Made by a program: the position numbers and the translations under genes. The notes beneath the pieces were generated by a model, which saw nothing but the letters and a program-made list of their open reading frames with translations, did not search any database and was not told where the DNA came from. Source: Octopus sinensis (taxonomy: Eukaryota). From it: a stretch of 64,000 bases of DNA. Location of the stretch: the NCBI RefSeq assembly GCF_006345805.1, contig NC_043017.1, positions 13,826,001-13,890,000 on the forward strand, read 5' to 3'. Below, one piece after another: positions 7,742 to 63,065 of this stretch; the stretch's first letter is position 1; each line of letters opens with the position of its first letter.

Positions 7742-9014
7742 GGTTGGCAACTAAGTTCCTGCGGTTTTTTTAAATTTTGGAATATATTGCGTTTTTAAAT
7801 TTTGGAATATATTTTTTTTTTTTGAGAATTCTATTTTTGAATCATTTTGGAATCCATTTTGCTTTTTTTTTCCTAGTTAATTTTTGTTTATTTTCAGATT
7901 ATTAAAATGGTATATCAAGTTAAGGAAAACAAGCATTTTCGACACCTCCTTCTTTTTGCTTTTAATCAAGGTTCTAAAGCTGCAAAAGCTGCTCGCGACA
8001 TTTGTGCTGTGTATGGAGAGGGTACCATAGGTGAAAGAACCGCTCGTGATTGGTATGCCAAGTTTAAAGATGGAAATTTTGACCTCAAGGACGCACTTCA
8101 TTTTGGCCGTTCTGTTGAGTTTGATGAAGAGCAATTAAACCAACTTTTACACGAAAATTCTCGTCAGACGACAAGGAAACTGGCAGAGAAAATGGAATGC
8201 TCCCACACTGCTATAGAGAAGCATCTTCACTTGATGGGAAAGGTTCAGAAGTATGGCGCATAGGTTCCGCATACTTTAAGTGACAACAACAAAAATCGAG
8301 TCACAATCTCCACTGGTTTTCTTGCTGGTCACCACTCAACTCATGGACACAAGCAAGTATTTCTTTACTGAATCGTTACTGGCGACGGAAAATGGTGCCT
8401 GTACATCAATATGAAGCAGCGTAAGGAATGACTTAACTCCGGTAAACAAGCAACACTGTGCGTGAAGCAAGATCTTCATCCACATAAAACGATGGTGTGT
8501 GACTGGGAAGGGATTATCCATTACGAATTGCTTGAACGGAACCAAACGGTCAACACTGAACTCTGTGTTCAACTGATGGAACGACTCAACACGGCTATCC
8601 AAACGAAAAGACCTTATCGGCAGCATGGAGTTCTTCTGCTGCTCAACAATGCCCACCCTCATATCGCCAATACGACCAAGGAAGCCATTCAAACGCATGG
8701 CTGGGAAGTGCTGCCACACTCGCCGTACTCTCTTGATTTGGCACCAACGAATTTCCACCTCTTTCGATCTCTTTCAAATACAATGCACGGAGTTTCATTC
8801 AGTACTGATGCAGAATTGAGAGCTGGTTGGATCAGTTTTTCAAGTCGAAATCAGGTGATTTCGACCAACGAGGTATTGAAAATCTTGTTGAACATTGGGA
8901 AGAAGTTGTAAACAACAAGGGTGAATACATTATTGATTAATTAGTTATTATTTTTTATTAAACCTTTAAAAAAATTTTAATTTAAATAAGCGGCGGGAAC
9001 TTAGTTGCCAACCC
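7742..9014 (+). mobile_element. Full-length (~1.27 kb) defective mariner transposon
   Basis: TIRs GGTTGGCAACTAAGTTCCTGC and GCGGGAACTTAGTTGCCAACC; TA at 7740-7741 and 9015-9016; encloses the transposase remnant. Confidence 0.95.
7907..8940 (+). pseudogene. Mariner (DD34D-type) transposase pseudogene
   Basis: HTH region followed by (W>stop)VPHTL, IVTGDGKW, LLLNNAHPH (cf. LHDNARPH) and HSPYSLDLAPTNFHLF (cf. YSPDLAPxD); stops, frameshifts and catalytic Asp-to-Asn changes. Confidence 0.93.
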
Positions 9015-14700: not shown

Positions 14701-15306
14701 CTCTCTTTCTCTCCTTCCTCCTCCTCCTTTCTCATCTTCGCCGTTTCTCTTAGCCTCTGTTTCTTATATTTATCTTCTTGTATGTACCCCCTCTTCCTCC
14801 ATTATAATCAGGACTACCCAGAATCCTTAAGCAAGACGCACTATCTCTTGTCTGTATACGCAGTTATAGAACTTCCCATTCTTGGTTCCAATAGGTGTTG
14901 GTTCATCCCTGTCTGTGTTTGTTTCTGCACTATCTTTTTCAATGAGGTGAATCTTCGTCACTCATTATCACTGTAAACATCACTGAAGAAGGCTAGGTTT
15001 TTGTGTTAGATTATGTTGCATCTCTGGTAGAAACATCAATTGTTCCTTGCAGATTCTTTCATTTACAATTTTTAAAAAAGACAAAACTCCATCTTGTCTT
15101 TCTTTCTACCAGAATATGTCAAAGACAATGAAGATGGGTCAGCCATCCATGCCAATTCTATTTGAAATTTCTTGAAATGTTGTTCCATTCTATTCACTTT
15201 CTCCCTTCCTTCAGTGAAATTTTATTTTACGTCTAAATGTTGGCAAAATTGTTAGCGAGGAAGCACAAACATACCTTGTGATCCTTGTTCTACCTGTGTT
15301 TTGGGT

Positions 15307-15533
15307 TTAACCCTTTTGTATTTAAACCGGCCATACCCGGCCAAAATAGCTAATCTGTTTTATGTTCAAACTGACCAGATCCAGGCTCTCACACCTACCC
15401 TACAATGTCATTTTACATTAAGTAATTACACCATCAAGATCTTGAAGATATGAGATAATGCATGATTAATTCAAATCAATGGGAATCAATAAGCATTATG
15501 TTTGATAGAATAATCTGAACACTAAAGGGTTAA
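15307..15533 (+). mobile_element. piggyBac-type MITE (family 1), left arm of inverted pair (includes TTAA)
   Basis: TTAA-CCCTTT...AAAGGG-TTAA. Confidence 0.9.
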
Positions 15534-15716
15534 ACTATACCAAGGGCAGATTGATGAAATAAGGAGCCAGTTAAGGGGAGGAGACTGGCTGTATTTTTAA
15601 AGTAGGAAATGAGATACTATGTATCGGTTCTGGTTCTTTGTATTTTGATTAAATGTGAGCTAGATTAATCCCCACTCTCCCTCACTGGGCTTTGGTTGTG
15701 TTTAGCCTGTTGTGAT

Positions 15717-15943
15717 TTAACCCTTTAGTGTTCAGATTATTCTATCAAACATAATGCTTATTGATTCCCATTGATTTGAATTAATCATGCATTATCTCAA
15801 ATCTTCAAGATCTTGATGGTGTAATTACTTAATGTAGAATAACATTGTAGGGTAGGTGTGAGAGCCTGGATCTGGTCAGTTTGAACATGAAACAGATTAA
15901 CTATTTTGGCCGGATATGACCGGTTTAAATACTAACGGGTTAA
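15717..15943 (-). mobile_element. piggyBac-type MITE (family 1), right arm of inverted pair (includes TTAA)
   Basis: TTAA-CCC...GGG-TTAA; reverse complement of 15307-15533. Confidence 0.9.
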
Positions 15944-16587
15944 TCCACTCTGTTGCAAGGACTTGTGTGAAGGTCACCAGTTTAAGAAGAATTTTGTCCC
16001 AAAGCCCATGTGTAGGGATTTGACCTTCCCTCTCACTATCTAAAAAAAAAAAAATTTCTTGAATAGTTAAGTATATTGGGCATGATGAGCTAATAACTAA
16101 GTCAACAAACATGGTGTTGATAACATCGTTTGTTGACTGCTTAGGTTGCATATTGACATATATAACCTACAAATGAATAGGATCAAGTTTCACTCACTTG
16201 GGTTCGGTGCTTCCATAAAAATTATCTGTCTTTTATTTGGTTTGTATTATTTTGAATTTGGTCAGTTGTTGCTTGGGGCCCACTGAAAGTAAAAATTTGG
16301 TAGAAAGCAGGCTATTGTTTCAAAGTGATCTAACTGTTGCCGTGTTTCATAGGCAAGAGTTAAGTTTGGCGGGTTGGTGATTAACAACCACTGCAGGCAG
16401 TGAAACCACCTTTTTTTTTGTATCTCTATGGTAACAGAAATAATGCACACCTGGATAAGAGCAGTGAGAATTGGAAATAAAAAGAGAAACACAGCCATTT
16501 GTGTGTGTCAAGGAAGTAGATAGTAGAAAATGTGTGTGTACATATGTATATTTGTATGCATAGGTGTATGTATTTGTATAAATATAT

Positions 16588-16781: not shown

Positions 16782-19381
16782 TATGTAAAATGTATATATG
16801 TACATGTTTGAATATATATATATTTATTTGTGTGGGTGTGTGGTAAGAAGTGTGGTAACAAGCTTCTCAACCACATGGTTAGAGAAAAATATAATCCAGA
16901 TAGGAAGACAGTTAATCACATCTTTAATGACCAGTTACAATTGTTTATGTACTAACTTTATTTCCAATGCCAATTCATGAAAAAATTCCATGTGAAAAGT
17001 CATATAATATTTATGGTAAAAAGCAGCAGTGTTGGTGCCACATAAAAAAGCATCCAGTACACTCTAAAGTGGTTGGCATTAGGAAGGGCATCCAGCTGTA
17101 GAAACCAAGCCTGGTGCTGCTCCCTGGCTTGCCAGTCCCTGCCAAATTCTTCAGTTCTTGCCAGCATGGAAGACACATGCTAAATCATTATCATCATCAT
17201 CGTTTAACGTCCGTTCTCCATGCTAGCATGGGTTGGACGGTTCAACCGGGGATCTAGGAAGCCAGAAGGCTGTACCAGGCTCCATGATGATGATATATAA
17301 TATTTATGTATGTGTCTTTGTGTTTGTCTCCCACCACTGCTTGACAACTGGTGTTTGTGTGTTTACATCTCTGTAACTTAGCAGTTTGGCAAAAGAGATC
17401 AATAGAATAAGTACAAGGCTTTAAAAAAATAAGTACTGGGGTTGATTTATTTGGGTAAAATTTTTCAAGCTGTAGTCTAATGACTGAAACAAGTAAAGCG
17501 TGTTTGTATACTCTCTCTCTTTTCCCTTTGCTCTTTTACTTGTTTCAGTCATTTGACTGCGGCCATGCTGGAGTACCGCCTTTAATCGAGCAACTCGACC
17601 CCGGGACTTATTCTTTTGTAAGCCCAGTACTTATTCTATCGGTCTCTTTTGCCGAACCGCTAAGTAACGGGGACATAAACACACCAGCATCGGTTATCAA
17701 GCAATGCTAGGGGGACAAACGCAGACACACACACACACACACATATATACATATATACGACGGGCTTCTTTCAGTTTCCGTCTACCAAATCCACTCACAA
17801 GGCTTTGGTCGGCCCGAGGCTATAATAGAAGACACTTGCCCAAGACGCCACGCAGTGGACTGAACCCGGAACCATGTGGTTAGTAAGCAAGCTACTTACC
17901 ACACAGCCACTCCTGTCTTTATTTGTCTTTATTATTTTTTTTCTACTTGTTTTAGTCATTAGACTGCAGCCACATTGGGACACTACTATGAGTTTAGTTG
18001 ACAATTCCAGGTAGTTATTCTGTTAGTCTTCTTTGCCAGATCACTCAGTTATGGGGGTGTAAACAAACCAACACCAATTGTCAAGTGGTTCTGGGGGACA
18101 AGCACACACATAGGTATATATACACATACATGACAGACTTCTTTCAGTTTCCATTTACCAAATTCACTCACAAGGCTTTGGTTTGGCCAGAGCTATAGTA
18201 GAAAACACTTGCCCCCGGTGCTACACAGTGAAATTGAACCTGGAACCATGCGGTTGAAAAGTAAGCTTACCACACATGTATATACCTATGTGTGTGTGTG
18301 TGTGTGTATGTATGTATATATATATACACAAACTGTAAAAATGAAGATAAATTTTATCTTCATTTTAACTGTATTTATATTTTGTTACACACACACACAC
18401 GCAGAGGAGGTGAGTGGGTAGTTTCCTGTAATTGAGTAATTCCTGATATCAGTCGATAACATTTTATCTGTGTATATGGGTGTTTAGTGATGAAGTGGGG
18501 TGGCATCTAAATCTGTTTGCGGTCTGTAGGTGTGTAGGGGTGGGCTATCTAGATATGTTAGAGGCGCAAAGGTGTAAAGGAGTGGATTTGGTTGCGTAAG
18601 GGTGGAGTGGGTAGCTGGATGTAACTTTGCACACTACACGTGTACATGCACACGTGCATGCACAGTTTTAATTTGATGTTAGCAAATTAGAATCAGTTAC
18701 ATTCCCCTCCTCCTGTGCCACCCCCACATCTTTGCCTTTTCTCTTTTTCTTGTTTCAGTCATTTGACTGCGGCCATGCTGAAGCACCGCCTTTAATCGAG
18801 CAACTCGACCCCGGGACTTATTCTTTAGTAAGCCCAGTACTTATTCTATCGGTCTCTTTTCACGAACCGCTAAGTTACAGGGACATAAACACACCAGCAT
18901 CGGTTGTCAAGCGATTTTGCAAGGGACAAACACAGACACACAAACACACACACACGCATATATATATATACATGTACATATATACGATGGGCTTCTTTCA
19001 GTTTCCGTCTACCAAATCCACTCACAAGGCTTTGGTCGGCCCGAGGCTGTAGTAGAAGACACTTGCCCAAGGTGCCATGCAGTGGGACTGAACCCGGAAC
19101 CATGTGGTTGGTAAACAAGCTACTTACCACACAGCCACTCCTACTTGAATATTATGTTTATGCAAAGTTTATGTGGTTGTTATGTGGTGCCTCCCCACTC
19201 CATCTTGGTGATGGAAGTGGCGTGCAATGGCTGTTTTGTGGTGTTCTAGTGGGAGAATGTGAGTAGACAAAGATGAGAATGGTGGCACTGTAACAGATGA
19301 TGTGAATGACAAGTTACTGCTGAGAGAATGAGACAGATGGTCACATGTGTTTTAATCGAAGTACTTGAATCTGTGGTTTAA

Positions 19382-19602
19382 CCCTTTAGCATTTAAACCA
19401 GCCATATCCGGCCAAAAGTATTCTGCCTGTTTTATATTCAAACTGGCTAGATCTGGTCTCTCACACCAATCCTACAATATCATCTTAAAAATTAACAGCT
19501 ACCTCATCAAAATCTCAAAGCTACAAGATAATACATGATTAGTTCAAAACAAAGTGGATGGAAAAGCATTAATTTTGGTAGAATAATGCGAACACTAAAG
19601 GG
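19382..19602 (+). mobile_element. piggyBac-type MITE (family 1); further copies at ~320-532, 20694-20911 and 62199-62413
   Basis: TTAA TSDs, CCCTTTAG/CTAAAGGG TIRs, shared internal sequence. Confidence 0.88.
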
Positions 19603-19820
19603 TTAAAGAGGTAGAAATTTGAGGTAAACTTTACATGTGTTCTTGTAAACCCATGCAGACGTGGAAAATTAGAAGTAAAACAAACGAATACATGTGTGTG
19701 TATACATATATTTTCTAATAAGCCCACTGGTTATTTGTGACACTAGTATCTGATTAGGAACTGGATTGTATATGTATATCACTGCAGAGAAATCTCTGCT
19801 ATCTCAGCTTTTGAACATCT

Positions 19821-19863
19821 ACCACTGATGAGGCCAGGGAAGGCTGAAATTACATGATCTGGT
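19821..19863 (+). ncRNA. Type-I hammerhead ribozyme motif (AUC site)
   Basis: ACCA-CTGATGA-GGCC agggaa GGCT-GAAA-TTA ca TGA-T-C-TGGT. Confidence 0.8.
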
Positions 19864-21172
19864 CGTCTCAATGGTGATGGCAGAGGAATATCTCCCACTG
19901 GCAGTATAAACATGAGTGCTTTAATGCACCATGAGTCCATGTGAGGATGTTCTTTCATGGTAACTATCACAATATTCTGTGTTCTACCACAACATCCAAT
20001 TTTGAGTGGGGATAGATATTACCATTTGGTATTAATGCTGCTTCCACTGAGAGCTCATCTCTGTATCATCATCATCATCATTGTTTAACGTCCGTTTTCC
20101 ATGCTAGCATGGGTTGGACGGTTCGGCCGGGGTCTGGGAAGCCAGGAGGCTGCACCAGGCTCATACTCAGAACTAGGTGAACCAGGCTGATGAGAGCAAA
20201 GTTACTTAGTCTTTGATATAGTACAATACCAGTGATGATCACAAACCATTAACTTCTTGACCAGTTGACCAATGCCCTGTCAATGGAAACGGGCACTAAC
20301 ATGGTTTTGTAAAACAAGATCACAGTCAAAATAATTTTAAAAACTGCCAAAACTAATTTGAGTTCTCCAACTTCTATATCTTGTCTCTAATTAAATTTGG
20401 CATCTTTAATTACTTGTTGTATAGCCCCTGGACAACACTGATCTTGCTACTCTTTCATGCAAGTAGTCACCTGAGCAACTAGGTATGATCTACAAGTCTT
20501 TTGTTTTCGGTTAGAACATCTATATCTATGTCAAATTTCTTTATTGTTAGCATTGTTTCCATCCAACATCTTCAACCATTTTTAAGATGGTAGGGAGGTA
20601 GAATTTGATGGTTATGTAGAATCTGGTTGCTAATTACACAAAAGTCTCTTTTCCTCTGATAAAAGGCGATGGCAGATATGGTGTCAGCTTTAACCCTTTA
20701 CCATTTAAACCAGCCATTATCTGGCTCAAATGCTCTACCTCTTTTATGTTCAAACTGGCCAGATTCAGCCTCTCCCACCTACCCTACAGTGTCATTCTAA
20801 AAATAAATAACATCTTCAAAGTCTTGAAGCTACAAGATAATACATGATTAATTTTTTTAAATGTGGACAAATAAGCATTACATTTGAGAAAATAATGTCA
20901 ATGCTAAAGGTTTAAATCTCCTGAGGCAACAACAACATGTAGTTTTGAAATGTGACTGATCAAGAAGACAGTGCTGCAGTAGTATGTTTATTTTGACTGG
21001 TTCCAGTTTTTGAACTGTGGCCTTGCTGGAGCATCTCTTGTGATGTACATGGTTGCTTTGACCACAGAATTTGTTTTATTGATTTACGAAGGATGACAGG
21101 CAATCTGGTGGAATTTGACAACAGAAAGAAATGATTTGCATAACCAAACACCACAAGGTATTTGGTTAAATA

Positions 21173-24223: not shown

Positions 24224-24774
24224 TTTGCAGGTTGTTTGGTAAAAGCTGAATGCTCATACATCATCTTCAGTGGGAGAGTCCATCATTATTATTATCATTA
24301 TTATTGTTATTATTAAGGCAAGCTGGTAGAATTGTTAGTATGCCGGGCAAAATGCTTAGCAGTATTTCACCCAACTTTATGTTCCGAGTTAAAATTTCAC
24401 CAAGGTTGATTTTGCTTTTTGTCCTTTCAGGGTTGATAAAATAAGCACCAGTTGAATACTGGGATCAATATAATCAACTTACTCCTTCCTCGAAATTACT
24501 GGCCTTGTGCCAAAAATTGAAATCGTTATTATTACTCCTATTTTTGTTGTTATTTATTATTATTATTATTATTAGAGTGTAGCGGGTGCACCAACCACTC
24601 CGAGAGTGCACCCACTACACTCTCGGAGTGGTTGGCATTAGGAAGGGTATCCAGCTGTAGAAACTGCCAGATCAAGACTGGAGCCTGGTGCAGCCATCTG
24701 GTTGCCAGCCCTCAGTCAAAACCGTCCAACCCATCCTAGCATGGAAAACGGACGTTAAATGATTATTATTATTA

Positions 24775-24807
<33 letters not shown>

Positions 24808-25007
24808 GAGTGTAGCGGGTGCACCAACCACTCCGAGAGTGCACCCACTACACTCTCGGAGTGGTTGGCATTAGGAAGGGTATCCAGCTGTAGAAACTGC
24901 CAGATCAAGACTGGAGCCTGGTGCAGCCATCTGGTTGCCAGCCCTCAGTCAAAACCGTCCAACCCATCCTAGCATGGAAAACGGACGTTAAATGATTATT
25001 ATTATTA

Positions 25008-25045
<38 letters not shown>

Positions 25046-26959
25046 GTTATTAGCACCACCACCTGTGGTAGCGGTATTTATTTTGAAGATACAAGGTGGG
25101 GGATGTAGATGAAAACCTCTCTCTTCCCTCTCTCTAATAAATAGAAGGTGCCATCAAAATAGATGTCCTCTTTTACTGTTTTGCGAGGAATATATTCCTG
25201 GAAGTGAAATTATCTTCCTGTACCAAAATAATTCTTTTGCAGCATAAATATAGAACTGTAAAAAACAGAGGGGGTAATTAGGAACATATATGTGTATGGG
25301 AGTGTGTATATATATATATATATATATATCTATATCTGTATATATACATATACCTATCTACATAGATGTACAGTCAAGTACATGCGTATATACATGCATA
25401 CATACATATGAATATCACACACATGCATGCATTTATAGTTGCCTTCATTCTCTCACTTCTGCATTATTAATAGGCCTTTCAGCCTTGCTTTCTTCCACTT
25501 TCACTCTCCCACGCTTTTTCTTATTCTCTCACTCCCCCCCCATCCAAATGCATCACCTCCACCAAGTGGTCTATTAACACCTCTACTTTGGTCCTTTAAA
25601 GGAAAGGCAGCTAACTACTACCATTCTCTGTCGTTCCTTTTATTTCAAGAGCTATGCTGCCACTGCTGCCTCCCACACCGAATATTCCTGGATCTTCTTT
25701 GACATTCGCAGATTCTATTGACACACTAATATATCCTTGTGCTCCTCTGTGGAAAATTCTTCACCTTTTATTATTACTATTATTATTGTTGTTGTTGTTG
25801 CTATTCCCACATTAGTCTCTCTCTCTCTTGAACTTCTTTTAGACAGTTATATCTATCTATCTATCTATATTTATTTATTTATTTATTTATCAATTCATCA
25901 ATCAGTCTGCTGTTTCTGTGCTGGTTGACCACACCTTTAATCAAAGCTGTTTCAATTGTAATTAACCATTTTTTTTTTTTTGAGACATGTTCTATCTCAG
26001 ACTATGTTTTCAAATGTGTCTTTTTTCAATGACTATAAGGTATGATTTGATGGGTATTTAGTGGGTCAGCCTTCAGAAATAGCATGCAGTCACTACCAGT
26101 CTTTCAAAAAAAAAAACCCCAAAACCCAAAGAAGCTTACATTAGATAATACAGTCCTAGATGGTTCTAAAAAGATGAGATTGGTATAATTGGAATGTTTT
26201 TGATCAAATCTTGCTCAGGATTCAAATGGAATCAAATAACAACCACCCTTGTAATGACATTAAGTAAAACCTGGATAGGTGTAGAATTATTTTGGAATGA
26301 TAGGAGAGAGAGAGAGGACAGAGCGTGTGTACCTTTGTAGCTCACCACACACTGGGGTGTGGTGTGTGTGTGTGTGTGTGTGTGTGTATGTATATGTCAC
26401 AGTAGATTTTTAGATTTATTAGGGTTAGGTACACTATGAAACATTGCTTACATCTCTTGGAAGATTGCATGTAGCAAGTACTTTTCCTGTTTGTTTAACC
26501 AAATGTATGGATATATATGTGTGTGTGTGTGTGTATATATATACATATATTTACATAATTCTTCATAATTGTTTGAGTGTGCCACATGGAAGTGTTGATA
26601 CTTGTCTCTGTTTTGGATGGCACTCTTGAACAATTGTGAAGATCTCTTCACATGAAACCATTGGTAACCTTATTAACCCACAAATAAAGAATATTTATCC
26701 ACCAAAGTGGTTTTGAGCACTTATTCTCACTGTTTGATGTTAGTGTGTGTTTGTGTGAATGCATATGTGTAAACAAGTAAGACATATATGCATTGATGTG
26801 TGTTGATATTTATTAAATTAGATAACTGGTTCTGTTTACTTTAAAATTGCTGTGATTTTGAATACTGAGCTAAAAATTGTGGTTTTACTTCTTTAGAAGC
26901 AGAAATATATGTTAATACATACTGTACGCACACAACATAATTTTTCTATTTACTTTCAG

Positions 26960-27057
26960 ATATTGAGTATGGATGAAGAAAAAATGTGGTACAAGGCTGA
27001 ACAATATGGCTCAGAGGGTTATGTTCCATACAACTATATACAGTTGAAACCACACCC
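26960..27057 (+). CDS. GRB2: GRB2/Drk-family adaptor, coding exon (C-terminal part of N-SH3): ILSMDEEKMWYKAEQYGSEGYVPYNYIQLKPHP
   Basis: tttcag acceptor and gtaagt donor; 98 nt, phase 0 to 2, the same length and phase as the equivalent GRB2 exon; SH3 motifs WYKAE and GYVPYNYI. Not in the ORF track. The symbol denotes the family; orthology is not established. Confidence 0.93.
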
Positions 27058-27979
27058 GTAAGTAACAACTTCACAATAGTAATCGTACACTGCACTTGTA
27101 ATTAAATCTGCAGCAATTTGACATCAAAACATTGCGCGGTATTCTCATTTAGGTTATATTGTCTTAATTAGTGTTGGATTTAATAAGTTGTAATGTATTT
27201 TACCATGGTTATACCTGTATGTATAACTGTTGCCTGTTCTGTTGCCATTGCTTGACTTGTTAGAAATAGCTGCTAAATCTGCTTACATTACAGCTTTAAA
27301 AAATAAAAAAAGATTGACCCTTTGGCTGATGTAGTTCTAAATATTACTGAAAAAAAAGAGAGTTGGTCGTGACTGGAACATCTTTGGTCTTAAGTCAGAG
27401 CTGGCCTGTGGCTAAACAGTTATACCATAACCTGCAGAAACCAGTGAGGGAATCTTTATATGGTTGCTCAACTTGCTAGAGATAGCAGCCAAATCTCTCA
27501 AACAACAACCTGTTGTTTGTAAAAAGGACTCATCAGATAAAATAATCTGAGATAGTGTGTGTGTCTAAAAAAAAAAAAAAAGAGGGTTGTCACAGATAAA
27601 ATAGCTTTAATCATCAATCTTCTGGTTTAGAGTTGACTTGGGATTAAACAACAATTTGATCTTCAAGCCAGGGCTTCAGTGTCTGTGTGGAACCAGGGAT
27701 TTGGTATTGATTAAAACAACATCTCTGTGCCTCTTGCTGGATCACTTAAGATTCTGACCTTTGTTGTTTAACCTCACCATTCAATCCTGATAAAGTACAC
27801 AATATGACCAAAGACGTTCCAGCTGTAACTATCTCCTCATATTAAGGGACTGAACAGGTTTTTTTTATCTCTTTAACATGATAGTATGATTTGATGGCAA
27901 TTTCACTGCTATTTCTACCAGGTCAAGGTACTGTGTTGATACTTAGCATTGGCTGGTTCACTGTGACCATTGTCGTTTT

Positions 27980-35636: not shown

Positions 35637-35852
<216 letters not shown>

Positions 35853-36697: not shown

Positions 36698-37027
<330 letters not shown>

Positions 37028-38779: not shown

Positions 38780-40336
38780 AGGAAGAGATCCATACCAGGA
38801 AGAAGCACCACTGGGTGAGGCAACTGCAGAAGTACTTCGCCAAAAATAAACCTCTGTATTTGGCTTTTGTTGAACTGGACAGAGCCTTTGACAGAGTCCC
38901 CCTCTCCCTTATCTGGTGGGCAATGCAGAAGCTAGGGATAGATGAGTGGTTGGTGACTGCCATGTACAGGGATGCTGTCAGTAAAGTGAAAGTTGCCAAT
39001 GCGTATAGTCAGGAATTTAGTGTACAAGTAGGAGTCCACTGTGGATTGGTTCTCCGCTTCCTTTCGTTTATCATAGTGCTCCAGGCTATAACAGAGGAAT
39101 TTAAGACTGGCTGCCCTTGGGAGCTTCTCTGCACTGATGACCTTGTTCGTATTGCTGAATCACTACCAGAACTGGAGAAGAAATTTCAGGTGTGGAAGCA
39201 AGGTCTGGAATCAAAGGGCCTTACAGTTAATTTAGTAAAGAATGAAGTCCTTATTAAATGGGAAAGCAGATATATCACATCTCCTTTCAGCGAGATGGCC
39301 CTGCTTGATATGTAGAAAAGATATTGATAGAAACTCTATATAGTGCACCTAATGCAAGCTATGGACACGAAGTGCAGTAGTATCACTGGAAGACTAACAA
39401 AGAAAGTTGTCTTTACATGTAGAAGGTGTGCGAGTACATTAAACACCAGGAATGTACCAAAAAATAGACTCCCTCATATATCAGGGTGGCCCCTTGGAAG
39501 TAGTTGACAGTTTCTGTTATTTAGGTGACCAAGTTGGCTGTGGTGGAGGTTGTTCTGAAAACATAGCTGCCAGAATAAGAATGGGCTGGGCATAGTTCAG
39601 AGAGCTACTTCTTCTGTTGGTAACAAGGTGCCTTACCTTCAGAGTGAAGGGCAGATTGTATGGTACCTGAGTACTAACAGCTATGCTGCGTGGCAGTGAA
39701 ACATGGGTTATGACTACTGAGAACATGCAAAAACTTGAAAGAAATGAAGCCAGTTTGCTCCATTGGATGGGTAGTGTCAGTGTGCATATACGACAGTGTA
39801 AGTGATTTGAGAGAAAAACTGGCTACGTGAAGCATCAGATGTAGTGTGCAAGAGAGAAGACTGTGCCGATATGGTCATGTAATGCACATGATTGAAGATA
39901 GCTGCATCAAGGAGTGCTGATCTCTAATTGTGAAGGAAAACATGGAAATTAGTGGTGAGAAAGGATCTTCAGACATTGGACCTAGCAGAGAGGTGACAAG
40001 GGACTGGAACTTTTGGCTCTTTGCTGTGCTTGAAAAAACATGTCAAGCTAAGTAAAATTGTTGTTGTTCTTGCATTGCATACAGGCATGACCCCTGCATC
40101 CCTCTTCAACTGAGCAATCCTAATCCTGCAGGTTTGTGGGAGCTGGTACCACATAAAAAGCACCTGTGCTGGTGCCTTTTAGAAGCACCCATGCCAGTGC
40201 TGTGTAAAAGAACCCAGTACACTTTGTGGAGTGGTTGACATGCTGCCTGGGAAGCTCTTCAGCTTACCAGCTCCTGTCAAACCATCCAACCCATGCTAGC
40301 ATGGAAAACATGTTAAATGATGATGGTGATGACGAT
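38780..40336 (+). mobile_element. 5'-truncated RTE-clade LINE (RT domain, Cys-rich insert, C-terminus, 3' UTR, (ATG)n-like tail)
   Basis: LAFVELDRAFDRVP, GVHCGLVL, LCTDDL (YADD), VDSFCYLGD, GSETW, YGHVMHM; 3' end CCAACCCATGCTAGCATGGAAAACATGTTAAATGATGAT; many stops. Confidence 0.92.
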
Positions 40337-43889: not shown

Positions 43890-44060
43890 GTAAAAGCGTC
43901 GTTTGACTTTGATCCGCAATACCCTGAGGAGTTGCAGCTACAGAAAGGGGAGATAATCACAGTTCTAGAAAAGAAAGATGAAAATTGGTGGAGAGGAGAG
44001 AACACTCGCGGAGTGCAAGGACTGTTTCCAGCCACATACGTTTGTGAAATACAGCAGTGA
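43890..44060 (+). CDS. GRB2: GRB2/Drk-family last coding exon (C-SH3): VKASFDFDPQYPEELQLQKGEIITVLEKKDENWWRGENTRGVQGLFPATYVCEIQQ*
   Basis: ttgcag acceptor, phase 0; SH3 motifs FDF, NWWRG and GLFPATY; TGA stop. Confidence 0.95.
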   Translation, partial: VKASFDFDPQYPEELQLQKGEIITVLEKKDENWWRGENTRGVQGLFPATYVCEIQQ

Positions 44061-52200: not shown

Positions 52201-53366
52201 CCTACAGTAGGAAGGCTTATTATTATTATTAAGGCAGCAGATGAAATTCTAAGTGGCGTTTTTATGTTCTGTGTTCCTTTCAAGGTTGATAAAATAAGTA
52301 CCGGTCATACATTGGGTTTGATGTAATGAACTAACACCCACCTCCAGGTTTCATTTTTTGCCTGCTAGTAGAAACAATTATTATTGTAAGAGTATCATAA
52401 GGTTCATATTTCGGCTCTTTATGTGTTCTGTGTACAAATGCTATTATGGTTAACTTTCAAGATTAATTAAAAGACCAGCCTAGTACTGGGGATGGAGTTT
52501 AATCTAACTAACCCTGATTATCCCACCCCACATGTTAGAAGTCATTCATATGAAAAGTTATTACACTAGTGTTAAAAAAGCATATATCTGACAGAATCAA
52601 TAGATCAATAAATAAAATTGATACATTTAGTTATCCCAGGATCTCCCCACTTCCTGTGAAATGGAGGTGTTGTCTTCCTGAAAATTTTGCCATCATCTAG
52701 AGTCCTATGATGCCAAACATGTTTTCTCAAAGACTTCCAAGTCCTGTACAGAGAGGTGTTTGGGAGAAATTGGGCTTGTATCCCTAAATTCTAGATGTTG
52801 AGGAATACAACAACACTTTTGCAAGATGGAAGATCCCTATCCCGATATCTTCTAATTTCAAAGCCCACTGTTATGGGTGGCTGTGGGTGGAAGTTTCAAC
52901 ATTGCCATTGTTCATATTGATAAAAATTATTAACCAGTTAAATTGACTGGAGTTTGATTTAATTGCCCCCCCCCCCACACACACACATGTCCGCTTTCCT
53001 CTGCCTATTATATGTGGTGTTGTGCCTCTTAGAGAAATTTCCATTATTGGTATTTTTTATCTTATGCTTTAATTCATATGTTTTTTCTCTTCCAGTCACA
53101 GAAAGAAGACAGACCCCCACCCCCCAACTGTTTTGCTCTTGTTCTTGTGTGACACTCCCTCCTCTGGTTCCTAAAGTCATCATAAAAGGAAAAAAAAAAA
53201 GTGCCATTTATAGAATGTTTTTGTTTGTTCTTTCTCTCACTCTCTTGCTCTCGCTCTCTCTCTCTTTTTCTTTTGGTTTGTTTGAAATAAATTTCAGATA
53301 TTATTTTCTGACAAAAATAAAAGAAAAGAAAAGAAATGAAAAGAGAAACTTCATACCCAAATTTAA

Positions 53367-53848
53367 CCCTTTAGCATACCGATTGCTCTGTCAAATGTTA
53401 TGCTTATTTATTCACATTGTCTTGAATTAATCAGGCATTATCTTGTGGCTTTGAGATTTCGATTATAGGATTGTTTACTTTTAGTATGACATTCTACCTT
53501 TCACAAGGTAGGAGAGTCCAGTTTGCTGGACATTGTTGTAAAGCTGAAAAAGAAGTAATTTCTACTCTTCTCCTCTGGAAGCCATCTACTCGCAATACCA
53601 GAGGGCGCACACTCTCCTACCTTGATGTAATCTCCAGGGATACAGGCATCCAGCAACAGGACCTCCGTAATGCCATGATGGACCGTGAAGTCTGGCGTAG
53701 CATGGTAAATTCCATTGTCTCGACCACGGTCGAACAATGATGATGATGACATTCTAGGGAAGATGTGAAAGCCTTGTATTTGGCCAGTTTGAGCAAAAAA
53801 ACAAATAGATCATTTTGGCAGAATATGGCCGGTTTAAATGCTAAAGGG
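53367..53848 (-). mobile_element. piggyBac-type MITE (family 1) interrupted by an RTE fragment
   Basis: TTAA TSDs at 53363-53366 and 53849-53852; TIRs intact. Confidence 0.9.
53497..53745 (+). mobile_element. RTE-type LINE 3' fragment inserted in a piggyBac-type MITE
   Basis: RRVQFAGHC...LLLWKP...DTG...MMDREVWRS; (ATG)n tail; perfect 11-bp TSD ATGACATTCTA at 53486-53496 and 53746-53756. Confidence 0.92.
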
Positions 53849-55932
53849 TTAAGTGGGATTTTTTAAAAATGTGTCTGAAAATATCAAAATAAAAGCAGTT
53901 TCCAACTATCTCACTCTCTCTCGCACACACACACATGAAATTCTGTTAAAATGAAATTAGTAGAATATAAAAAATTTATTAATGTTCAAAGACACTTTGT
54001 TCTTTGCTCATGTGAGCTAAAACTATACAGATTTCAACAGTTGCAACTGCCAGGAATCCGTTAAATATATCAAAACACTAATTAATATGAAAGTGTCTCA
54101 ACTCTGACCATTAGGTGAATGAAGTAACCATCTCATCTTTTTTTATGGATTTGGAGTTTTTTTTTAATTATTATTTTTTCTCATTTTAGTAAGAATGAAA
54201 ATGTTCCGATTGAGGTTTATTTTTCATTTCATACTCTTACTCTTTTACTTGTTTCAGTCATTTGACTGCGGCCATGCTGGAGCACCGCCTTTAGTCGAGC
54301 AAATCGACCCCGGGACTTATGTTGAGATTTCAGTACAAGTAAGAAAATAAAACAAAAATAAAATAGGACACTACAGAGAATCACCTCCAAATGAGTTTAT
54401 TTCGCCGTACATTATGACAACCTCTTGGCAGTTGTGTAACAGGGGTCATTATGCCTTTGTTTTGGATTAGGAACAACTACAAAAAGCATTTCTATTTGGA
54501 AGGTGCCCTGTTATTTAGAATCAAGTTAGGCTTTGGGCATTCTTAGACATAGTGACACGAGTGTTTCAGTTGTACATAAATTTTATAATTTTATTTATCG
54601 AGGCTGGTGGATTGGCAGAATCGATTAGAGCTTTGCAAAAAACGTGTAGCAGTCTTTTCTCTTGGCTCTTTGTGTTTTGAATCCAAATCCTGCCAAAGCC
54701 AACTTTGCTTTTTTATCTGCCCAGGGGTCAATAAAGAACCACTGAAGTATGTTTCTTTACTACCCACAAGGGGCTAAACACAGGGAACAACTAAGGACAG
54801 ACAAACGGATTAAGTCGATTACATCGACTCCAGTGCGTAACTGGTACTTTATTAATCGATCCCGAAAGGATGAAAGGCAAAGTCAACCTCGGCGGAATTT
54901 GAACTCAGAACGTAACGGCAGACGAAATACGGCTAAGCATTTCACCCGGCGTGCTAACGTTTCTGCCAGCTCGCTGCCATATACCTATTTCTTTATTACC
55001 CACAAGGGGCTAAAGATGGAGAGGACAGACAAATGAATTAAATCGATTACATCGACCCCAGTGCATAACTGGTTCTTAATTTATCAACCCCGAAAGGATG
55101 AATGGCAAAGTTGACCTCGGCGGAATTTGAACTCAGAACGTAACAGCAGACGAAATACGGCTACGCATTTCGCCCGGCGTGCTAATGGTTCTGCCAGCTC
55201 GCTGCCTTAGAGTCAATGTAATTGGTTGCTCTCCTCCTCTAGAATTCAGTCCTGCTTCTGCAACAAACAATTATTTTTAATCATATGGATTTAATTATTT
55301 TGTCATTAATTAGATTAATTTTTTTTTTTAATTTGGATTTATAGTATCTATTTGAATTTCAGACTAGAAGGGATGGTTACAGTTGGAACGCTTTCACTCT
55401 TACTAATTTAAAAAAAAAAAAAAAAGTAAAATCTCTGAATCCATAACAAACAAGATAGTCAAATCTAGACTACTCTGTGTTCTAAGGTAGAAGGAACATA
55501 TATGATTCCCTTAAGAGGAAAGACCATATTGTTAATGGTCGGAATGTTTTAATAAATTTGTGATTTGTTTATTGATCTCAGCTTTGAAATTTGCATATTT
55601 TCCATTCATGTCTGAAAAGCCAAGAGAATTGGGTAAATTCGGTTTGGTTTTGAGAAATTTCTGTTTCAGTCTATAAAGAATCCTAATGAAATAACTTTAT
55701 ATTTAGTGCAGTCCTTTGACACAGATATGTGTGTGTATACATACATAGCATTCCTTGCCATAGTTGATATATTTGTCACCTGTGGGTCTGATTTGACAAG
55801 ACTGTCACCTCAAAAATTTTAAATACGTGTGTGTATATGTATATATATAATATATATATACTTTTCGTCACTGGAAAATCGGATATATATTTGCAAAGGG
55901 AGGCCTACTTTTCATCGACAACCAGTGATTGT

Positions 55933-62102: not shown

Positions 62103-63065
62103 TCTCCACTCACATACATTTTCCTTATCTATTTGATACTCTCTCTTGCTTTTATATTTTTCTTCTATTTTTAACAAGTTCTATCTCAGACGTTTTAACC
62201 CTTTAACATTCAGATTATTCTGTCTAATCTAATGCTTACTTATTCACATTGAATTAAACGTGCATTATCTTTTTGCATTGAGAGTTCGATGATGTGCTTG
62301 TTTATTTTTAGCATGACATCATAGGGCAGGTGTGAGAAGCTGAATATAAGCAATCTGTACATAAAACAGGTAGAATATCTGGGCTGGATCTGGCCGGTTT
62401 AAATGCTAAAGGGTTAAAGTTGATCTCTCTCTTCCCTTCTTTTCTCTGTCCCCTCCTTCGCTTCCTCTTTCATGACACCTTGGTTAAGTGCCTTCTACTC
62501 TAGCTTTGTGAGTGGATTTGGTTGATGGAAACTAAAAGAAGCTCATCATATATATATATATATCGCAGGAGTGGCTGTGTGGTAAGTAGCTTGCTAACCA
62601 ACCACATGGTTCCGGGTTCAGTCCCACTGCATGGCATCTTGGGCAAGTGTCTTCTGCTATAGCCCTGGGCCGACCAATGCCTTGTGAGTGGATTTGGTAG
62701 ACGGAAACTGAAAGAAGCCTGTCGTATATATGTATAAGTGTGTGTGTCTGTGTTTGACAACCGATGCTGGTGTGTTTACGTCCCCGTCACTTAGCGGTTC
62801 GGCAAAAGAGACCAATAGAATAAGTACTGGGCTTACAAAGAATAAGTCCCGGGGTCGATTTGCTCGACTAAAGGCGGTGCTCCAGCATGGCCACAGTCAA
62901 ATGACTGAAACAAGTAAAAGAGTAATATATATATACATATATATATATATATGCTGAGCTTCTTTCAGTTTCCATCAATCAAATCCACTCACAAAGCTTT
63001 GATTGGCCCAAAGCTAGAGTAGAAGGCTCTTAACCAAGGTATATATCTATCTATCTATCTATCTA

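Follow-up and report, generated by a model that had tools for sequence, protein, structure and literature searches.

Does an octopus GRB2 gene carry a self-cleaving RNA in its first intron? The window analysed here, a 64-kb stretch of Octopus vulgaris/sinensis DNA whose gene is GRB2, contains on its plus strand a motif with all the core letters of a type-I hammerhead ribozyme. Most likely, this motif is a stranded and probably inactive copy of a mobile element or a coincidence, rather than a regulator of GRB2. Within that answer we favour a solo, decayed hammerhead of the retrozyme type, with a probability of about 0.5.

Coding exon 1 of GRB2 lies upstream of the window and exon 2, the first exon visible, begins at 26954, so the motif falls in intron 1, a location that the preliminary description had raised conditionally, and is in sense orientation. 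The gene is 104-118 kb long in three Octopus assemblies, with a first intron of roughly 90 kb. The segment that bears the motif is bordered by a SINE-like repeat at 19375-19607 and by another SINE from 20065. Pfam matches in the window are limited to fragments of a mariner transposase and of a LINE-type RVT_1, both far from the motif; the mariner-type fragment is situated elsewhere in the intron. The features discussed below are as follows, with their basis in brackets.

19608 to 20064, no strand assigned: segment unique within the window, bearing the motif (repeat comparison)
19774 to 19778, no strand assigned: GTATA, found again at 19904-19908 (read from the sequence)
19781 to 19814, plus strand: 5' arm of the outward extension of helix I, with ACUGC, GAGA, CUCUGCUAUC and UUGA (pairs re-checked)
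19819 to 19824, plus strand: helix I, 5' strand CUACCA (sequence, pairs re-checked)
19825 to 19831, plus strand: core C3-A9, CUGAUGA (sequence, descriptor scan)
19832 to 19845, plus strand: helix II, GGCC/GGCU, 4 bp with a 6-nt loop 2, AGGGAA (sequence, pairs re-checked)
19846 to 19849, plus strand: core G12 A13 A14 A15.1, GAAA (sequence)
19849 to 19858, plus strand: helix III with an ACAU tetraloop, not a true palindrome (sequence, pair check, self-duplex prediction)
19859 to 19860, plus strand: predicted scissile bond, C17 then U1.1 (placed by standard hammerhead numbering)
19860 to 19865, plus strand: helix I, 3' strand UGGUCG (sequence, pairs re-checked)
19868 to 19905, plus strand: 3' arm of the extension, with UCAA, GAUGGCAGAG, UCUC and GCAGU (pairs re-checked)
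26954 to 27058, plus strand: coding exon 2 of GRB2; all of the window before it belongs to intron 1

The motif occupies 19821-19863 and reads ACCA-CUGAUGA-GGCC(AGGGAA)GGCU-GAAA-UUACAUGAUC/UGGU, with the slash at the predicted cleavage position. On re-checking, every letter and pair that had been described for it was present. The invariant core nucleotides are complete (11/11) and are accompanied by A15.1-U16.1, C17 (position 19859) and three helices; the elements common to any hammerhead core (C3-A9, G12-A14, A15.1-U16.1 and H17) are all in place. Helix I joins ACCA (19821-19824) to UGGU (19860-19863) and is lengthened by C19819-G19865 beyond a U19820xC19864 mismatch, which the alignment to the HH9 model also flags; it comprises 4 bp at the core, or 6 positions if the mismatch is counted. 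Helix II has 4 bp between GGCC (19832-19835) and GGCU (19842-19845), and its 10.1-11.1 pair is a G19832.U19845 wobble, as had been noticed at the outset. Helix III has 3 bp (A19849-U19858, U19850-A19857 and U19851.G19856), and the tally of three helices holds only when G.U pairs count. In canonical metazoan type-I hammerheads, helix I counts 6 positions, helix II has 4 bp capped by a loop of 6 nt, and helix III is short and ends in a tetraloop (PMC4209133, PMC7229834). The candidate has these sizes, and its helix III also lies within the published range of 1-2 bp beyond 15.1-16.1 and a loop of 2-4 nt (PMC4209133).

How readily would such a motif arise by chance? A relaxed type-I descriptor that allows G.U pairs accepts one of the 34 CUGANGA sites on the two strands of the window. 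Given the heptamer, the probability of a match is 4e-6, which corresponds to ~1.4e-4 matches expected per 64-kb window and roughly 6 per 2.7-Gb octopus genome. The motif fails both the descriptor that forbids G.U and the one that demands G10.1-C11.1. It is quite possible, at clearly less than even odds, that there is no ribozyme ancestry at all, and that CUGAUGA and GAAA happen to stand at a fitting spacing among short, G.U-tolerant helices in an ordinary imperfect inverted repeat of an AT-rich intron. Chance matches to the relaxed descriptor across the genome, and the passing of that descriptor only, speak for such a coincidence, as does a scan of GTDB genomes, in which the one match, a comparable core and stem II pattern, lies by chance inside Sulfitobacter coding DNA. 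Against it stand the expectation of only ~1e-4 in the window and the helix and loop sizes, which are exactly the canonical metazoan ones rather than scattered over the permitted ranges. Type-I hammerheads commonly number from hundreds to more than 100,000 in animal genomes (PMC4209133, PMC7229834), and the low expectation set against this abundance, like the canonical geometry (PMC4209133, PMC7229834), counts for descent from a hammerhead.

In the scenario we favour, a type-I hammerhead like those found in animal non-LTR retrozymes and in the repeats of Penelope-like elements would have inserted long ago, as a solo monomer and on the sense strand, into the present intron 1 of Octopus GRB2. The invariant core and the flank hairpin, which closes helix I in retrozyme RNA, would be the parts that survive, while the remainder drifted: C11.1 probably became U by CpG decay, helix I would have acquired its mismatch, and helix III would now be weak and not self-complementary. 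Decay at 11.1, already proposed in the preliminary description, is plausible, since CpG o/e in the window is 0.37 and the hammerhead-like controls described below all have C at 11.1, followed by G12. A preprint gives retrozyme units of 51 to 972 bp, describes dispersed solo monomers as common, and places about 43% of Xenopus copies in introns (bioRxiv 10.64898/2026.07.22.740005). A perfect core, however, would not be expected in a copy that had drifted that far.

Covariance models offer little encouragement. In Rfam searches nothing reached the gathering score at the motif, and a search of 701 nt returned nothing hammerhead-like at E<=10. The best match in a 76-nt search was HH9, with 13.6 bits (cut-off 52) and E = 0.39; Hammerhead_1 was never among the matches listed for the motif, where the Hammerhead clan CL00010 is represented by its best overlapping match only. 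The lack of a significant score had been named beforehand as evidence against a ribozyme, and this is what the search returned. The same bases score alike on unrelated models (mir-367, 15.8 bits; archaeal C/D snoRNA, 13.5 bits), a noise-level result that favours coincidence.

Control hammerheads sharpen this point. A metagenome scan with the stem I and core pattern yielded 35 loci, about half of them resembling real hammerheads; of 18 loci tested, 10 passed Rfam Hammerhead_1 with 36-52 bits (cut-off 34). These controls were chosen by 22 fixed letters of stem I and core that they have in common with the candidate, and their scores with identical letters, against 13.6 bits for the candidate, count against ribozyme descent. 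So do the family-specific features outside the search pattern, all of which deviate. The 10.1-11.1 pair is G-C in 19/19 control motifs accepted by the hammerhead descriptor and G.U in the candidate. Control loops 2 are of the type Y-A-A-N-N-A, of which AGGGAA retains only the terminal A. At 15.2-16.2 the candidate has U-A where controls have C-G, and its helix I is mismatched. Helix III had been called near-palindromic, which holds only loosely: the self-duplex of AUUACAUGAU is predicted at -3.4 kcal/mol and out of register, and helix III of the eukaryote-type controls L011, L012, L013 and L032 is a perfect 8-nt palindrome with -10.3 to -13.3 kcal/mol. Features that the descriptor leaves free thus look random beside real hammerheads, as coincidence would have it. 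The closest control, L013, with an identical stem II pattern (GGCC...GGCC) and a 6-nt loop, counts for a decayed hammerhead. Among the loop 1 and loop 2 nucleotides that would serve the tertiary contact, the 5' internal loop is UAC or UAU in controls and ACAU in the candidate. The type-I assignment of the preliminary description stands for architecture and core, and falls short on Rfam score, palindromic helix III and homologues in the collections searched.

Beyond the core, flanking arms extend helix I outward. UUGA (19811-19814) pairs with UCAA (19868-19871), CUCUGCUAUC (19794-19803) with GAUGGCAGAG (19876-19885, one G.U), GAGA (19787-19790) with UCUC (19891-19894), and ACUGC (19781-19785) with GCAGU (19901-19905), so that the outermost pairing reaches 19781/19905. 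In-register pairing of these arms exceeds that of shuffled sequences (p = 0.009) and of genomic controls with the same geometry (p = 0.027), as expected if the flanks close helix I in retrozyme RNA; as independent evidence at p ~0.01-0.03, it also weighs against coincidence. The rod-like fold first described was overstated. Taken as a whole, the stability of the 127-nt rod is ordinary (z = -1.09 on the plus strand, -1.78 on the minus strand), and its MFE is nearly equal on the two strands, which gives no plus-strand preference. Mismatches had been explained as wobbles of the plus strand, but asymmetric internal loops and the UxC mismatch also interrupt the helices. An ordinary fold, no better on plus than on minus, is again in line with coincidence.

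The hammerhead fold lies 6.6-7.1 kcal/mol above the MFE, and real controls with a short helix III lie 2.0-7.6 kcal/mol above theirs under constrained folding. With the gap inside the control range, the computed fold does not discriminate on activity, and the gap itself counts for hammerhead descent. An argument against activity from misfolding, based on an 11 kcal/mol deficit, was dropped because the controls, when folded with the same constraints, have gaps of 2-7.6 kcal/mol. The hammerhead-constrained energy of -4.4 kcal/mol is the weakest among the motifs compared (others -6.2 to -28.8), and the hammerhead helices have an ensemble probability of at most 1%.

Could the paired arms belong to something else? 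A small MITE-like inverted-repeat insertion, or else a hairpin RNA gene that has escaped recognition, at ~19779-19905 and with an accidental core, would account for the significant pairing of the arms, the ACTGC...GCAGT inverted ends, the TA-rich flank and the GTATA direct repeat on each side, and a mariner-type transposase fragment does occur in the same intron. The GTATA repeat may, on weak grounds, represent a 5-bp target-site duplication around a unit of ~125 bp. It stands in TA-rich sequence, and its right-hand copy runs into the outermost helix. We nevertheless consider such an element very improbable: it has no second copy in the 64 kb, where other repeats are present in as many as 7 copies, it matches no Rfam family, and its arms are short and interrupted, with no inverted repeat reported at the site by a DNA-level repeat finder.

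Within the 64-kb window we found no second hammerhead motif, no further copy of the motif segment, although other repeats there reach up to 7 copies, and neither a tandem nor a direct repeat at the motif. No RT-like open frame lies within 5 kb on either side, and tblastn with 31 ORFs of at least 150 aa, stop-free frames from hammerhead-bearing metagenome contigs, gave no match in the window, where no Penelope-like coding sequence was found. None of the metagenomic loci carries the candidate's flanks, a viral scan gave no match, and a protein query made from the 63-aa ORF that crosses the motif on the minus strand led to no paralogous contigs. The Argonauta hians GRB2 locus (63.6 kb, L002) contains no hammerhead counterpart, in a comparison where introns are not alignable and only SINEs and exons align. 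Two loci of ~20 kb each, reached through LINE-RT homologues and one of them probably not octopod, hold no relative of the segment, in what was an underpowered sample. The homologues anticipated in the preliminary description are thus missing from the metagenomic, GTDB, viral, Argonauta and sampled LINE-linked collections, and its Penelope-like or retrozyme context finds no coding sequence or tandem repeat in the window to support it. The missing copies, tandem array, Penelope-like ORF and relatives count against a relic, and the single copy without relatives suits coincidence. Dimeric cleavage, also suggested earlier, would need a second copy, and the 64 kb holds none. On the reading of a decayed solo monomer, no dimeric active form would be available, and the candidate would most likely cleave poorly or never and have no role in GRB2 expression.

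Amniote HH9 and HH10 are intronic ribozymes thought to self-cleave pre-mRNA. By analogy, a functional hammerhead would cut the GRB2 pre-mRNA after 19859, as was originally conjectured, and modulate transcript output or release an intron-derived RNA. The complete core, sense orientation and intronic location are compatible with this, as are a fold gap no worse than that of real type-I motifs and a best Rfam clan member, HH9, that is itself intronic and has a helix III (3 bp plus loop) alike in shape. We still judge function very improbable. The weakest constrained energy of the comparison (-4.4 vs -6.2 to -28.8 kcal/mol), helices that make up at most 1% of the ensemble, a 64-kb window without a dimer partner, and the missing counterpart at the Argonauta hians locus with its unalignable introns all speak against it. 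Another deviation is the G.U at 10.1-11.1, where G10.1-C11.1 is highly conserved in canonical metazoan type-I hammerheads (PMC4209133). Retrozyme copies are also depleted from introns, according to a preprint whose authors read this as selection against genic insertion (bioRxiv 10.64898/2026.07.22.740005).

A living, lineage-specific hammerhead is a similarly long shot. One version would make it the founder of a small octopus retrozyme family, of ~125 nt, in which helix III is not palindromic and G.U is tolerated at 10.1-11.1. In the other, it would be an intronic ribozyme, domesticated to cut the GRB2 pre-mRNA of cephalopods and an invertebrate counterpart of HH9/HH10. If active, the motif would be a sense-strand self-cleaving RNA within a first intron of ~90 kb, in the gene for an essential signalling adaptor; relevance to gene regulation would follow only from a motif that is both active and conserved. 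If it is instead the decayed retrozyme-type copy that we favour, cephalopod genomes become worth scanning for hammerhead families, none of which is described in the literature searched, where we likewise found no description of hammerheads or retrozymes in Octopus. The locus also teaches that a complete hammerhead core may convince by eye and yet fail the family model and most hallmarks.

How, then, does the candidate compare with known systems? It resembles HH9 (RF02275) and HH10 (RF02277) in being type I, on the sense strand and within an intron of a protein-coding gene, with a helix III of ~3 bp and a small, non-palindromic loop. Its HH9 score is far below the cut-off of 52, and it is missing from the GRB2 locus of Argonauta. 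HH9 and HH10 have G-C at 10.1-11.1 and an intact helix I. The minimal hammerheads that Penelope-like elements carry in their pseudo-LTRs are also type I, with a weak or absent helix III and low activity as single motifs (PMC4209133). The candidate shares their architecture and weak helix III and perhaps a link to retroelements; unlike those elements, it has no RT or GIY-YIG coding sequence nearby.

The hammerheads of non-LTR retrozymes (RF00163, Hammerhead_1), known from Schistosoma Sm-alpha, newt satellite 2, coral, mussel and axolotl (PMC7229834, PMC4209133), offer the fullest comparison. From these the candidate differs in its G.U at 10.1-11.1, helix I mismatch, loop 2 AGGGAA and U15.2-A16.2, in having 8 rather than 6 nt, non-palindromic, between GAAA and UC, and in standing as one motif in 64 kb without head-to-tail repeats. 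It is like them in type-I topology, complete core, AT-rich host DNA and flanks that close helix I. The agreement extends to the 6 positions of helix I, whose ACCA/UGGU is identical to that of many members, to a 4-bp helix II with a loop of 6 nt, and to a very short helix III that ends in a tetraloop. Should the motif be a relic, it would be a further case of the known spread of type-I hammerheads through animal genomes by way of retrozymes and Penelope-like elements.

All of the hammerhead elements listed in the preliminary description are present when 19600-20100 is read and the outer helices are checked pair by pair. The core is laid out as follows:

19821-19824, plus strand: ACCA, 5' strand of stem I
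19825-19831, plus strand: core CUGAUGA
19832-19835 and 19842-19845, plus strand: stem II, GGCC/GGCU, with loop AGGGAA
19846-19849, plus strand: GAAA, then UUACAUGAU, then C at 19859
19860-19863, plus strand: UGGU, 3' strand of stem I

Hammerhead numbering makes G19832.U19845 the 10.1-11.1 pair and 19859 C17, which puts the predicted cleavage site at 19859/19860. Helix III comprises A19849-U19858, U19850-A19857 and U19851.G19856 around the loop ACAU, and helix I may be taken as six positions long (CUACCA/UGGUCG), one of them the mismatch U19820xC19864. Given a CpG o/e of 0.37 in the window (TpG+CpA o/e is 1.28), it is plausible that the U at 11.1 arose from a C by decay of a CpG formed by C11.1 and G12.

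A relaxed descriptor, set only as loosely as the candidate needed, was run on the 34 CUGANGA sites on both strands of the window. It demands at least 4 bp in helix I, 4 bp in helix II and at least 3 bp in helix III including 15.1-16.1, together with GAAA, H17, 4-10 nt in loop 2 and 3-8 nt in loop 3; G.U pairs are allowed throughout. Only the candidate passes (1/34). Simulated at the window's first-order composition, P per heptamer is 4e-6, for a chance expectation of ~1.4e-4 per window and ~6 per 2.7-Gb genome. The observation is real, and its chance occurrence in one window is improbable. The candidate fails stricter descriptors that exclude G.U or demand G10.1-C11.1, and the 64 kb hold no second hammerhead-like motif.

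Four outer helices (UUGA/UCAA; the 10-bp CUCUGCUAUC/GAUGGCAGAG, with one G.U; GAGA/UCUC; ACUGC/GCAGU) form the rest of a 127-nt rod-like fold, 19779-19905. They are not, as had been thought, interrupted by wobbles only; asymmetric internal loops lie between them. When the ribozyme is swapped for a clamp, the two 42-nt flanks fold at -34.6 kcal/mol, versus -24.8 ± 3.3 for shuffles (p = 0.009); of genomic controls with the same geometry, 2.65% match this energy. Such in-register pairing counts for ancestry and against coincidence. Taken whole, the 127-nt fold has no unusual stability (-37.7 kcal/mol on the plus strand, z = -1.09) and its minus strand folds equally well (-37.9 kcal/mol, z = -1.78), so the proposed plus-strand signature is not visible in energy terms. 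It is very improbable that the site is another hairpin element. In the 127-mer the hammerhead fold reaches -26.3 kcal/mol versus the minimum noted for the plus strand, and its helices have an ensemble probability of at most 1%. The hammerhead-constrained energy, -4.4 kcal/mol, is the weakest among all motifs compared, and would become -7.0 with C at 11.1. The energy gap was dropped as an argument against activity: under constrained folding the candidate (6.6-7.1 kcal/mol) falls within the range of real short-helix-III controls (2.0-7.6), so the gap does not discriminate. The 5-nt direct repeat GTATA, at 19774-19778 and again at 19904-19908, may mark a target-site duplication, which is weak evidence in TA-rich DNA; besides this pentamer, the motif site has no tandem or direct repeat.

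Human GRB2 identifies four exons in the window by tblastn:

26954-27058, plus strand: GRB2 coding exon
35706-35852, plus strand: GRB2 coding exon
36803-36985, plus strand: GRB2 coding exon (aligned 36803-36967)
43890-44057, plus strand: GRB2 coding exon

Their protein is identical to Octopus vulgaris/sinensis GRB2 over the compared part and differs from O. bimaculoides GRB2 by one residue. The first coding exon is absent from the window, lying upstream, and in three Octopus assemblies the annotated gene extends over 104-118 kb (the Argonauta hians gene over ~62 kb); 1-26953 is therefore intron 1, here >27 kb long. The suggestion that the first intron spans the site thus holds, with exon 2 at 26954 and the motif in sense, and reading it as a hammerhead-type motif in intron 1, on the sense strand, is reasonable. 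That this is an active intronic ribozyme is very unlikely. Cutting of GRB2 pre-mRNA, dimeric cleavage and Penelope or retrozyme membership, all proposed earlier, are supported by none of the tests run.

No Rfam model matches anywhere in the window at its gathering score, and a 701-nt search at E <= 10 contains no hammerhead match. In a 76-nt search the only hammerhead is Hammerhead_HH9, an intronic amniote form, at 13.6 bits versus a cut-off of 52 (E = 0.39), about as high as mir-367 and snoRNA matches to the same bases, which are spurious. The covariance models thus give the candidate no significant score, one of the three outcomes that the preliminary description had itself named as refuting. 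With 45 positions and a 4-bp palindrome as helix III, the Rfam type-I model is narrow, so failing it excludes typical membership, not hammerhead chemistry.

As controls, metagenome contigs scanned for ACCACTGATGAG..GAAA..TCTGGT yielded 35 loci. Ten control loci score 36-52 bits with Hammerhead_1 (cut-off 34), and two controls adjoin long ORFs with weak RVT_1 matches. Controls and candidate have 22 fixed letters in common, so the score difference rests wholly on the remaining features. In the controls helix I is perfect, 6 bp long and covarying (AUACCA/UGGUAU, ACACCA/UGGUGU, GUACCA/UGGUAC), G10.1-C11.1 is present, loop 2 follows the pattern Y-A-A-N-N-A, and helix III is a perfect palindrome, A-CNNNNG-U. 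The candidate departs from them at all four, which counts for coincidence. Its helix III self-duplex is weak and out of register (-3.4 kcal/mol, versus -10.3 to -13.3 in controls) and there is no partner copy, so a dimer mechanism is poorly supported. On two metagenome contigs a type-I hammerhead lies beside GOLLD RNA and tRNA arrays, a phage-like layout: L007 (169-639, 1027-1073, 1131-1904, 2652-3047), which also has a tmRNA, and L035 (1205-1252, 1645-2100, tRNAs).

The motif lies within a 457-bp segment, 19608-20064, that is unique inside the window. Repeats and element fragments in the window are:

19375-19607: SINE-like repeat (~230 bp), directly adjoining the motif segment
322-540, 15304-15534, 15716-15948 (minus strand), 20689-20916, 53362-53852 (minus strand), 62194-62418 (minus strand): other copies of this repeat
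17184-17251, 20065-20132 and others: (ATC)n SINE, an (ATC)n run then GTTTAACGTCCGTTTTCCATGCTAGCATGGGTTGGACGG, flanking the motif segment from 20065
8462-8908, plus strand: mariner-type transposase fragment in GRB2 intron 1 (Pfam Transposase_1, E = 1e-9)
38815-39312, plus strand: LINE-type RT fragment in the intron that separates visible GRB2 exons three and four (RVT_1, E = 1.3e-8)

The seven SINE-like copies are 73-79% identical to one another. The (ATC)n SINE, which also occurs in L040 and at dozens of sites in the Argonauta GRB2 locus L002, is common to this window, O. bimaculoides and Argonauta and, because Octopus and Argonauta both have it, is an old octopod repeat family. Identical match lists against Argonauta SINE copies at 24616-24784 and 24849-25017, offset by 233 bp, suggest local tandem duplication of a SINE-containing unit. 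The two element fragments are the only Pfam matches elsewhere in the window; the mariner-type one is overlapped by a 140-aa antisense ORF, and relatives of the LINE-type one include many O. bimaculoides proteins. No RT-like open frames occur near the motif, and tblastn with ORFs of hammerhead-bearing retroelement contigs finds no match in the window.

In the GRB2 locus of Argonauta hians (63.6 kb), exons and SINEs are all that is common to the window, and nothing matches the descriptor. No relative turned up when the ORF that runs across the motif was searched at the protein level, in a viral scan, or at two loci sampled via LINE-RT homologues, and the metagenome loci have nothing in common with the candidate beyond the imposed core. 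GTDB genomes yielded a single chance match, inside coding DNA of a Sulfitobacter MAG: at 1177-1212 of L038, CTGATGAGGCC..GGCCGAAA..TCTGG in alanine/glutamate-rich sequence is a hammerhead-like core plus stem II by chance. Among the LINE-RT homologues, P0166 (194 aa, 'RNA-directed DNA polymerase, partial [Escherichia coli]', from a 586-bp contig) matches the octopus fragment at 68% identity and is probably eukaryotic contamination of a bacterial assembly. L039 (ENA ERZ25069866, a 3.0-Mb contig), from a 'metagenome' assembly with Mb-scale contigs and many LINE RT and integrase ORFs, has none of the octopod SINEs and resembles a eukaryotic genome whose ORFs were called in prokaryote style. Covariation would be the strongest possible evidence.

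So, is the site a retrozyme remnant? We give a probability of roughly one half to a decayed solo retrozyme-type hammerhead. The weighing sets the ~6 motifs expected by chance in a genome against true copy numbers that in invertebrates typically run from hundreds to thousands; pairing of the flanks in register and the four non-canonical features roughly cancel. A coincidence is possible, if somewhat doubtful, and a small share of the probability is assigned to none of the readings. The candidate matters little unless genome-wide copies or cleavage data show otherwise. Canonical metazoan type-I hammerheads combine a 6-bp helix I and a 4-bp helix II with a helix III that is 1-2 bp long and capped by a small palindromic loop, and G10.1-C11.1 is highly conserved among them. 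Tandem retrozymes and Penelope-like repeats carry such hammerheads, often with dimer-only activity (PMC4209133, PMC7229834). Retrozyme units measure 51-972 bp, dispersed solo monomers are abundant, and ~43% of Xenopus copies are intronic, yet introns are depleted relative to intergenic DNA (2026 preprint, bioRxiv 10.64898/2026.07.22.740005). An intronic solo unit of ~125 bp would thus be ordinary for the class. The candidate is at most another, probably dead, member of a well-known kind.
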